NCBI RefSeq assembly: GCF_011386835.1
Contig: NC_088793.1
Coordinates: 201,500,001-201,564,000 of the forward strand
From: Chrysemys picta bellii
Lineage: Eukaryota
Direction of reading: 5' to 3'
Length of the DNA stretch: 64,000 bases
Position 1 is the first letter of the stretch, and every line of letters starts with the position of its first letter. The position numbers and the translations under genes are program-made. Positions 62,071 through 64,000 of the stretch are shown here, in pieces. The notes under the pieces were generated by a model. The model was not told the DNA's origin, did not search any database, and saw only the letters and a list, made by a program, of their open reading frames with translations.

Positions 62071-62603
62071 TAGGGTTACCATTCGTCCGGATTTACCCGG
62101 ACATGTCCTCCTTTTGTGTGCTAAAAATAGCGTCCGGGGGGAATTTGTAAAGCACTCACAATGTCCGGGATTTCCCCCTCCCCCGGCAGAGCGAGCGGCT
62201 GGGAGGGCTGCAGGAAAGTCCCGGGCTGGACTCCGGAGCAGCTTCCTCCTCCCACCCCCCCCTCCCTGCATTCTGAGCCGGCCGGCAGCTCCTCCTCCTG
62301 CAGCCCGCTCCGGCAGCCCTGTGCAGGGCCAGGGACCGGGTTTTGTGTTGTGCAGGGGAGCTCAGCCATGTGTCCGGCTGGCACAGAGCCCAACACCCTG
62401 TTCTGAGCAGCAGGGTAAGGGGGGGCAGGAGAAGGGACAGGGAGGTTCTGGAGGGGGCAGTCAAGAAACGGGGGGGGGGGCTTTTGGAGGGGAGTGGAGA
62501 AAGTTTTGGGCAGTCAGGGTACAGGTAGGGGGTAGGGTCCTGGGGGGCAGTTGGGGGGGGTCTTAGGAGGGGGCAGTTAGGGGACAAGGAACAGGGAGTC
62601 TTA
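62071..62603. mobile_element. hAT (Blackjack-like) MITE, left part, interrupted by R2
   Basis: TIR TAGGGTTACCATTCGTCC; subterminal GTCCGG/CCGGAC repeats; G-rich interior; no right TIR within the window. Confidence 0.85.
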
Positions 62604-62605
62604 AT

Positions 62606-62905
62606 GGCTCTCTTAATGGCTCTCCATGCGTCTCTGGACCCTCTCAGCTGTCGGGCTTGGACGGAAACATTGCCTGAGGGTAGTGAGAGAATGGGTTATC
62701 GGTGAGGTGGGGGTGGGCGTGAGCCCGGTCAATAGGGGCAACCCCTACCAAGATCTGAGCCTTTTCTCACACGCCCGTTAGAGCTCGACATTATGCTGTT
62801 TGGGACCCCTCTTTGAGGAAAGCCTCTGGATTGCAAGTCCAACCGCTACCTCCTCGTGGTGAGAGTCGGTAACTGGCTTGGATAGCCAGGCGGATTGCGG
62901 AGGAC
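62606..62905 (+). ncRNA. HDV-like self-cleaving ribozyme of the R2 5' UTR
   Basis: P1 GGCTCTC (62606-12 or 62618-24)/GAGAGTC (62861-67); P2 GTCC-AA-CCGC (62837-46)/GCGG-A-GGAC (62897-905); P3 ACC/GGT with L3 TCCTCGT; P1.1 CC/GG (62868-69); P4 CTGGCT/AGCCAG; candidate catalytic C62891. Confidence 0.85.
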
Positions 62906-62974
62906 GAACCCACATCCCACGTTCAGTGGGGTGTGGGACGGGGTTGGGCAGCCCCATATGGTGCCACATGGATG

Positions 62975-63159
62975 CCCCCCTGGTAAGGGTAGCCTCCCCC
63001 AGGTACGGGTTGACTCCCCCTGGTAAGGGTTAGATTCCCCCTGGTAAGGGTAGTTTCCCCCAGGCACGGGTTAGTTTCCCCCTGGAAAGGGTTAGTTTCC
63101 CCCAGGTACGGGTTAGTTTCCCCCAGGAAAGGGTTAGTTTCCCCCTGAGAAGGGTAAAT
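62975..63159 (+). repeat. About 9 copies of a 20-21 bp tandem repeat CCCCC(A/T)GGTA(A/C)GGGTTAGTTT
   Basis: Units begin at 62975, 62996, 63016, 63037, 63057, 63078, 63099, 63120 and 63141. Confidence 0.93.
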
Positions 63160-63168
63160 CTTTTAGCT

Positions 63169-64000
63169 ATGGAAAAAAGTAATTTATATTTTTATACCGG
63201 ATTGGCGCTGGACCGGGTTAATAACGCCCCCGCTGTTGGCTTTGATGCCCCGGCTGACAGTGTTAAATATATTAGGGGTGTGATCAGGGTCGCTGGACCA
63301 ATGGATAAAATGGTGTGGACTATAATGAAGTCTCATGAGAATGAGAGTGAGAATCAAGTCCTCCCAGTGGAGCATGGAGAGGAGGTAGAGGAGAATGTTT
63401 GTGATGATCATGGTGAGGAGATTTTATCTATCTTACCGATGGTTTTTACAAGGGACACTTTTAATGATTTAACTATGGACAGTTTTAATCCAGATTTTAA
63501 GTATTTAAGTACATTTGATGATCCATATGTTAGGGAATCAAGTACTGATTTTAATAGGGATCGTAATAAGGATCTTAACAGTATTGGTAGTAATATAAAT
63601 ATATTAGAAAGTAGTTCATGGAAGGATGGGGTTTTTTATTTAGAGTATCCCGTTGATAGTTTTAATTGTCCAATATGTCCCCAGATATTACCAACATTTG
63701 GTAAATGGGCCAAACACATTAATGTGGTTCATAAAAGTAAAGCCATACGAGTTGTATGTAGTAAATGTGGAAAATCTTCTCAATATCATAATATAGCTTG
63801 CCACTACCCCAAGTGCATACCCAAGAAGGCGGATACCCCAATGAAGAGCCATACGTGCTCGGTCTGTGGGCTTGGTTTTCATACTAGATCTGGATTGAGC
63901 CAACACTGTAGACATAGACACCCTGCTGTGAGGAATGAGCAAAGAAAAGAAGATATGGCTGCTAAAAGTAAGATCAAAGAGGGATCGATTAGATCTCGTA
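63169..64000 (+). CDS. R2 retrotransposon protein, N-terminal 277 aa (partial, runs off the window): acidic N-terminal extension plus three zinc fingers
   Basis: Hand translation, no stop in 277 codons: MEKSNLYFY...FNCPICPQILPTFGKWAKHINVVHKSKAIRVVCSKCGKSSQYHNIACHYPKC...HTCSVCGLGFHTRSGLSQHCRHRHPAVRNEQRKEDMAAKSKIKEGSIRSR; ZFs at 63667-63732, 63757-63816 and 63856-63921; start context GCTATGG. Confidence 0.9.
   Translation, partial: MEKSNLYFYTGLALDRVNNAPAVGFDAPADSVKYIRGVIRVAGPMDKMVWTIMKSHENESENQVLPVEHGEEVEENVCDDHGEEILSILPMVFTRDTFNDLTMDSFNPDFKYLSTFDDPYVRESSTDFNRDRNKDLNSIGSNINILESSSWKDGVFYLEYPVDSFNCPICPQILPTFGKWAKHINVVHKSKAIRVVCSKCGKSSQYHNIACHYPKCIPKKADTPMKSHTCSVCGLGFHTRSGLSQHCRHRHPAVRNEQRKEDMAAKSKIKEGSIRSR

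Follow-up and report, generated by a model that had tools for sequence, protein, structure and literature searches.

Segment 62606-62905 of the window (the whole stretch of DNA analysed, 64,000 nucleotides of Chrysemys picta bellii) probably constitutes the HDV-like self-cleaving ribozyme at the 5' end of a young family of R2-type retrotransposons, with a P1 strand retained from a former insertion site in 28S rRNA genes. The sequence-only reading of this DNA had taken the element for a single ectopic R2 copy. It turned out to belong to a family of at least 224 insertions, 97-100% identical and about 4.6 kb long, that has switched to one site in a hAT-type MITE. The segment 62560-62960, which includes 46 nt 5' of the supposed junction, recurs at 97-100% identity in more than 200 places.

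The ORF of the element runs uninterrupted in the window copy from the ATG at 63301 to L031:2894 and encodes about 1197 amino acids. Its N-terminus contains C2H2 fingers, and the finger region aligns to that of R2Tg; Pfam recognized RVT_1 (E 3e-35), and its zf-C2H2 match was weak and below the cut-off. Among solved structures, R2 proteins match it best (9nl2_A, E 2e-204; R2Tg 9dou, 3e-191), with coverage to near the C-terminus. Fingers, reverse transcriptase, endonuclease and nearest relatives are those of the R2 clade and, judged by these matches, the product is a genuine R2 protein. In a protein search one NCBI Chrysemys picta bellii protein was 99% identical over the whole R2 ORF query; besides it no homologs closer than 40-45% were found, the next being from shark and coelacanth. 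The 99% identical model, of 1291 aa, is named cGMP-inhibited 3',5'-cyclic phosphodiesterase 3B isoform X1, which means that a gene model has absorbed the transposon ORF. The 5' UTR between the putative ribozyme and the ORF holds a 21-nt tandem repeat array (Table 1), which is also present in relatives 76-88% identical and is therefore an old feature of the lineage. A sub-threshold Rfam match to ACA59 at 62921-63035 overlaps this array and was taken as chance. In public runs, all 24 found being Logan contigs of guessed type, the R2 5' region is present under at least five organism labels; four of them, compared with the window over 62622-63000, showed a single difference, 62921 G>A, present in all four. 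Given this near-identity, either a number of closely related taxa have the R2 family in common or the labels are nearly synonymous.

The HDV-like elements at 62837-62905, read from the window sequence, are complete and their strands follow in the right order, as had been claimed. The segment reads GTCCAACCGC-T-ACC-TCCTCGT-GGT-GAGAGTC-GG-TAA-CTGGCT-TGGAT-AGCCAG-GCGGATT-GCGGAGGAC, and the order of a nested double pseudoknot, P1, P2, P3, L3, P3', P1', P1.1, P4, J4/2, P2', is found throughout. P1 comprises 7 bp with one G-U, P2 4+4 bp with an AA/A internal loop, P3 3 bp, P1.1 2 bp and P4 6 bp. L3, UCCUCGU, has two C for P1.1 and the conserved U...G, and a C is present in J4/2, which here (C-GGAUU) is longer than in HDV. 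This C62891 aligns to the conserved C of the HDV-F-prausnitzii model of Rfam and is the candidate catalytic base; an alternative candidate is C62898, combined with a 4-bp P2.

Table 1. Positions of the window copy, its predicted ribozyme elements and its host MITE (positions are those of the window unless a locus is given; the slash in target sequences marks the insertion point)
Feature	Position	Strand	Basis or remark
5' half of host hAT-type MITE	62071..62603	+	ends ...GGGAGTCTTA at the R2 target CTTAGG/TAGGGGG
Filler AT at the window junction	62604..62605	+	target GG missing; other copies have AT, nothing, T, ATTTAT and others
R2-type non-LTR retrotransposon	62606..64000, on to L031:3191 past the window	+	about 4586 bp in total
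Putative P1 5' strand GGCTCTC	62606..62612	+	first 7 nt of the element; homologous to 28S GACTCTC (-13 to -7)
J1/2 insert, 224 nt	62613..62836	+	predicted closed rod
P2 5' strand GTCCAACCGC	62837-62846	+	sequence; P2 predicted by RNAalifold
P3 ACC; L3 TCCTCGT; P3' GGT	62848-50; 62851-57; 62858-60	+	Rfam HDV-like consensus
P1 3' strand GAGAGTC	62861-67	+	kept in 4 of 6 old relatives
P1.1 GG	62868-69	+	pairs with C62852-53 of L3
P4 hairpin CTGGCT, loop TGGAT, AGCCAG	62873-78 (CTGGCT), 62884-89 (AGCCAG)	+	pair table over seven sequences
J4/2 GCGGATT	62890-96	+	contains the candidate catalytic C62891, aligned to the conserved C of the Rfam model
P2 3' strand GCGGAGGAC	62897-62905	+	sequence and alignment
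21-nt tandem repeat array, 8.2 copies, unit CCCCCAGGTAAGGGTTAGTTT	62976..63145	+	5' UTR
3' half of host MITE	G000:C3:201567192 (L031:3192) to L031:3768		to 3.7 kb past the window end

A covariance-model search had been suggested in the sequence-only reading. At the gathering score Rfam gave no match, and the curated score of an HDV-like model was not reached. With permissive filters two HDV-like models matched the core below threshold, HDV-F-prausnitzii at 62833-62902 (19.4 bits against 44 required, E 0.48) and drz-agam-1 (18.5 bits against 37 required, E 0.59). The P3/L3 consensus of both models, ACCUCCuCGuGGUg, equals the core letter for letter. Scores below gathering are to be expected, because the P1 strand lies about 250 nt away and is invisible to the models, which cover other subfamilies.

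GAGAGTC had been recognized as the complement of 28S GACTCTC, which is correct; the 28S heptamer occupies positions -13 to -7. It had further been claimed that GGCTCTC occurs twice, pairs 7/7 with one G-U across a J1/2 of about 210-225 nt and can stand in for the 28S strand, and this held on all counts: each copy (62606-12 and 62618-24) pairs with GAGAGTC at all seven positions, with one G-U, and J1/2 measures 224 nt when counted from the first copy, 212 nt when counted from the second. The P1-to-P1' separation is 248 nt, and no third such heptamer occurs from 62480 to 62837. Heptamers of the class GRYTYTY occur about once per 550 nt per strand within the window, so that a match anywhere in the 250 nt upstream is not significant; the chance of one beginning exactly at the independently defined 5' end of the element is about 0.002-0.005. 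A local P1 strand adjoining P2 does not exist, the attempt of the Rfam model, GCAAGUC, having three non-pairs.

The element's 5' end was defined by a census of junctions. The search found 112 5' junctions, 100 of which were listed and used to count categories. An exact start at GGCTCTCTTAATGG was seen in 59 of the 100, behind variable target deletions, filler or microhomology. Thirty of the listed junctions read GGGAGGCT/CTCTTAATGG..., via the GGCT common to the MITE and the first bases of the element; GGCTCTC follows straight after CTT, CTTT or CTTA in 14, in 12 it comes after either a duplicated target piece or other filler, which can reach about 20 nt, and three junctions carry three leader repeats. 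CTTA+AT+GGCTCTC, the form in the window, was counted 26 times and is the commonest single form. The remaining form, with a single repeat, CTTA/ATGGCTCTCC, was counted 15 times. For three further organism labels, Logan contigs of R2 have their first base at 62606 or 62607, and those of the MITE reach 62603 and then run on into the empty site; a contig break at 62606 is read only as the point where copies begin to differ. From the junction census it was concluded that the invariant part of the element starts at G62606, which is the cut predicted with P1 at 62606-12, cleavage being expected directly 5' of this G.

The 3' junctions are uniform, the R2 end ...GTACATAAA abutting TAGGGGG in 224 copies. 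Set against these, the 112 exact 5' junctions (both numbers are lower bounds) make it appear that about half of the insertions have no full-length 5' junction. R2 elements that are cut at their own end have uniform 3' junctions, together with 5' junctions that vary and show deletions, added bases and microhomology (PMC3774820). A cut at 62606 followed by random filler does not account for the two identical extra bases that recur in CTTA+AT+GGCTCTC; uncleaved or upstream-started templates that pair with the target CTTA may give rise to the recurrent AT.

The census also separates the two copies of GGCTCTC, which the sequence-only reading had treated as equivalent. Genomic 5' ends at the second copy (GGGAGGCT/CTCCATGCG, or short filler followed by CTCCATGCG) were found in one copy genome-wide, compared with the 59 listed starts at the first. 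It might be supposed that the ribozyme is active with a P1 formed by the second GGCTCTC, or by both interchangeably, since both heptamers pair equally well with GAGAGTC and the single-repeat junctions contain only one of them. However, the single-repeat junctions all keep TTAAT in front and can therefore be explained by priming on the internal CTTA(AT), and in the old relatives described below the second segment has the sequence GACTATC and cannot pair with GAGAGTC. Moreover, the second GGCTCTC is engaged elsewhere in the predicted fold. J1/2 folds into a rod with an MFE of -91.5 kcal/mol (z -2.54), the basal helix of which, 62619-62626 / 62827-62834, takes in the second GGCTCTC and contains a compensatory change from A-U to G-C at 62619/62834. 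RNAalifold keeps the rod, in which 12 pairs are maintained despite changes on both sides. A P1 made by the second copy is accordingly rated as highly improbable; in the folding model this copy probably closes the J1/2 rod, leaving the first copy as the P1 strand. Forcing P1 costs 2.4 kcal/mol only, the gain from P2 and P1.1 being left uncounted.

The host of the family is a non-autonomous MITE of 1.0-1.3 kb (about 1112 bp) with at least 1830 candidate copies, most of them without R2. Elements of the hAT type are recognized by terminal inverted repeats starting with YARNG and by an 8-bp target duplication. The MITE has the TIRs TAGGGTTACCAT / ATGGTAACCCTA, and 8-bp duplications were found in most of 26 empty copies and in the window copy, where the duplication is ccctatgc. 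It is very young and abundant, many copies being 100% identical over 350 bp. The MITE interior consists of G-rich tandem units, and at least two subfamilies exist, with GGATTTACCC... versus GGATTCCCCC... near the TIR and GGGAGT versus GGGAGG at the R2 site. The empty site reads GGGAG(T or G)CTTAGG/TAGGGGGTGGGG, and R2 is inserted exactly at the slash (L035 and others). Every examined insertion of the young family lies at this one site, CTTAGG/TAGGGGG, and among the first 100 GGGAGG sites listed, about 4 contain R2. The R2 site in 28S reads GACTCTCTTAAGG/TAGCC, so that the MITE and 28S targets share CTTA(A)GG/TAG. The young family does not sit at the canonical 28S sequence TTAAGG/TAGCC; it is R2 by protein and not canonical R2 by target.

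As every copy is flanked by a MITE with its own 8-bp duplication, and as the MITE is so young, R2 and MITE might have been moved together as a composite by the hAT transposase, with ribozyme and R2 retrotransposition not in current use. For such a composite, one shared junction and one MITE haplotype would be expected in most copies, an expectation already contradicted by more than a dozen forms of the R2/MITE 5' junction and by R2 copies 98-99% alike that reside in MITEs only 88% alike near the TIR. In addition, R2 is present in both the GGGAGT and the GGGAGG subfamily, few of the listed GGGAGG sites are occupied, and about half of the insertions seem to be without a full-length 5' junction. 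Differing junctions, subfamilies and MITE divergence indicate independent R2 insertions, and joint movement by the transposase is hardly credible.

The origin of the leader, the first bases of the element, is revealed by old relatives of the family. Three places in the genome join the family's 3' end to TAGCCAAATGCCTCA; the old relatives located there are 76-84% identical. One of these three has 45 nt of 28S-like upstream flank, GGTAAATGGTGGGAGTAACTAGGACTCTCTCAATG (28S: GGTAAACGGCGGGAGTAACTATGACTCTCTTAAGG), and 27 nt of 28S downstream. Five more old copies at other loci contain the leader GACTCTCTTAATGACTATCC or decayed forms of it. The old relatives, overall 76-88% identical, carry GACTCTCTTAATG, and only they have 28S-like flanks. 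From the leader of the old relatives together with these flanks it follows that GGCTCTCTTAATGG of the window is homologous to 28S -13 to -1. The leader has drifted from GACTCTCTTAAGG to GGCTCTCTTAATGG, and the A-to-G change at its second position keeps the P1 pairing, as G-U. Judged by homology, 28S -13 to -1 has been retained as a copy in the leader, and the predicted ribozyme is now self-contained. GGCTCTC had been regarded as junction sequence; it proved to be part of the element's own 28S-derived leader, present with every copy.

In an old relative the first bases after the leader, ACTAGCCATGCATCTC, resemble 28S TAGCCAAATGCCTC just downstream of the R2 site; the resemblance of 62625-62640 to downstream 28S is much weaker in the young family. 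At its 5' end the element may also hold a fossil of downstream 28S, as has reportedly been described for the earwig R2. Old broken R2 copies of the window lineage form a cluster on the chromosome-level contig C24 (L063, G000:C24:14504500-14514499; C24:14515568; C24:14518975). Short 28S-like fragments lie between them; one copy has an internal deletion, and at one junction two R2 copies are joined head to tail. By its appearance this cluster is what remains, outside the present rDNA, of an rDNA unit or of insertions that carried 28S.

Close protein relatives being absent, the old genomic copies were used to study covariation, and pairs were counted across seven sequences, the window and six old relatives (721-column alignment). 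Identity of the window to the old relatives is 89% in the core, compared with 72% in J1/2 (Fisher p 1e-13, the comparisons not being independent). P3 is invariant and P1.1 nearly so; changes in P2 are mostly to G-U. The P4 pair 62874/62888, U-A in the window, is C-G in three old relatives, and both intermediates occur as well; as a compensatory pair it is weak, each of the two changes being a CpG transition. RNAalifold gives a covariation term of +0.69, about zero, in a set of old relatives that are dead copies with many changes due to CpG decay. C62891 is part of a CpG. Three of the six dead old copies have T at this position, and 29 of 30 young copies have C. The 69-nt core is identical in 23 of the 30 young copies.

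The sharp 5' end could also stem from a transcription start. Pol I no longer feeds the element, GC and CpG are abundant in the MITE upstream of R2, and internal promoters are present in many non-LTR elements. G62606 would then mark the start of transcripts from an internal or MITE-borne promoter, and the HDV-like core would be a relic that no longer cuts. Arguing against this possibility are the better preservation of the core than of the adjoining J1/2 and the integrity in young copies of a CpG-borne C62891 that has decayed in half of the dead ones. Furthermore, the complement of P1', seven bases long, starts precisely with the element's first base, and its register has been kept after the A-to-G change, which is unexpected for a relic. 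A promoter with an inactive core is therefore considered unlikely, and a functional ribozyme is preferred.

The same genome contains a canonical R2 in 28S (L062, G000:C105:140500-144920, minus strand; 4290 bp) with a 1326-aa ORF. Its three-finger protein matches PDB 9nl2_A at 1893 bits and is 37% identical to that of the window family; nucleotide similarity between the two was not found. Like the window family, the canonical element has a three-finger R2 protein, the nominal target TTAAGG/TAGCC and the same core layout, here ACC TCCCCGT GGT TCCCGCT GG. It differs, besides its protein, in that it stays in rDNA and in that its P1', TCCCGCT, pairs with 28S GGCGGGA at -28. Of 325 28S target sites 308 are intact, and several of the other 17 are occupied by canonical R2; 28S sites followed by non-T are at chance level and outside rDNA contigs. 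R2 of the window family was not found in present-day rDNA, the insertions there being of another family. An 826-bp 5'-truncated canonical R2 copy is repeated in contig C201. The R2 3'/28S signature A/TAGCCAAATGCCTCGTCATC was also seen on large chromosomal contigs outside the rDNA arrays (G000:C1:97227200, C2:85207072, C3:70878912, C16:13268083, C16:13406574, C17:20824239, C17:21149030); these sites may be dispersed 28S fragments with R2 ends.

In the proposed mechanism, the element in its hAT-type MITE would be transcribed by read-through from upstream. The core, with P2, P3/L3, P1.1, P4 and C62891, would fold, the first seven bases, GGCUCUC, would pair with GAGAGUC over the self-folded 224-nt J1/2, and the RNA would be cut just 5' of G62606. 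The released RNA would then enter target-primed reverse transcription into CTTAGG/TAGGGGG of other MITE copies. Since the cut would lie at the element's own end, second-strand synthesis would be primed by microhomology and added bases, which would result in the variable 5' junctions. Ancestors in the canonical 28S site would have been cut at -13, so that their RNA would always have carried 13 nt of 28S, and a leader kept on leaving rDNA would have made the ribozyme independent of the flank. With the P1 strand inside the element, release from any read-through transcript without rDNA is predicted to be possible. The success of the family outside rDNA, with at least 224 near-identical insertions and 5' ends at the predicted cut, fits such an rDNA-free release. 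It is likely that a vertebrate R2 lineage escaped from rDNA by retargeting of its endonuclease and DNA-binding to CTTAGG/TAG in the MITE, combined with a ribozyme that the leader made flank-independent.

Several parts of this picture are already known, namely the kind of ribozyme, the long J1/2, the cleavage at -13, the tandem leader repeats and the end-cleaving variants (PMC3774820). In known R2 ribozymes the P1-P1' distance ranges from 23 to more than 700 nt, and J1/2 of silkmoth measures 216-498 nt; the 224-nt J1/2 and the 248-nt gap fall within the published R2 range (PMC3774820). Cleavage at -13 occurs in R2 of Nasonia vitripennis and in Tribolium castaneum R2-B (Eickbush, Burke and Eickbush 2013, PMC3774820), which resemble the turtle element in the double-pseudoknot core, a P1 3' strand that pairs with 28S GACTCTC, the 13-nt 28S leader on the RNA and tandem leader repeats at some junctions. 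In contrast, the turtle leader belongs to the element and not to the flank, the element is outside rDNA, and the cut is predicted at the element's own end, with variable 5' junctions as in Drosophila. Silkmoth R2 also has a long insert between P1 and P2, which is partly needed for cleavage (PMC3774820), but cuts at -28 and has no P4, whereas the turtle element has a regular 6-bp P4 and a J1/2 predicted to be self-closing. The ribozymes of Drosophila R2, R4/Dong, L1Tc and RTE likewise cut at the first base of the element (PMC3774820; Ruminski et al. 2011 cited there), and their 5' junctions show target deletions, added bases and microhomology (PMC3774820). Their P1 strand is ordinary element sequence, unlike that of the turtle, which traces to the former 28S target.

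Departures of the R2 clade from the canonical 28S site are represented by R8, R9, R2NS-1_SMed, R2NS-1_CSi and sponge R2-like elements (PMC5035012, PMC13188248). R8 and R9 still target rRNA genes and the R2NS and sponge elements have no site preference, whereas the turtle family is site-specific in a DNA transposon of a vertebrate. In the literature, Repbase lying outside the search, no report was found of a vertebrate R2 that is site-specific for a DNA transposon, and the literature likewise yielded no previous case in which a fossil of the former target had made a ribozyme self-sufficient. The target switch of R2 to a MITE appears to be unreported.

R2 is a model for site-specific retrotransposition, and R2 proteins are being developed for gene insertion at rDNA. 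This makes it an open question, and a practical one, how the choice of target can change. The turtle genome offers a natural comparison, in which one R2 lineage stays in 28S and a second, formerly there, now hits a MITE; it has landed there with precision in hundreds of cases, although the new site and 28S have only CTTA(A)GG/TAG in common. The junction census provides an unusually clean in vivo record of second-strand synthesis priming. The ribozyme, with its predicted cleavage, would account for a 5' end that stays defined when there is no co-transcript with rRNA. A published idea is also supported, since Eickbush et al. foresaw that sequence of the 28S/R2 junction could become a new P1 strand (PMC3774820). 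If the interpretation is true, the family represents a natural retargeting of R2 in the very protein family that is being engineered for gene insertion, and cleavage upstream in the target would pre-adapt an element to life outside that target.
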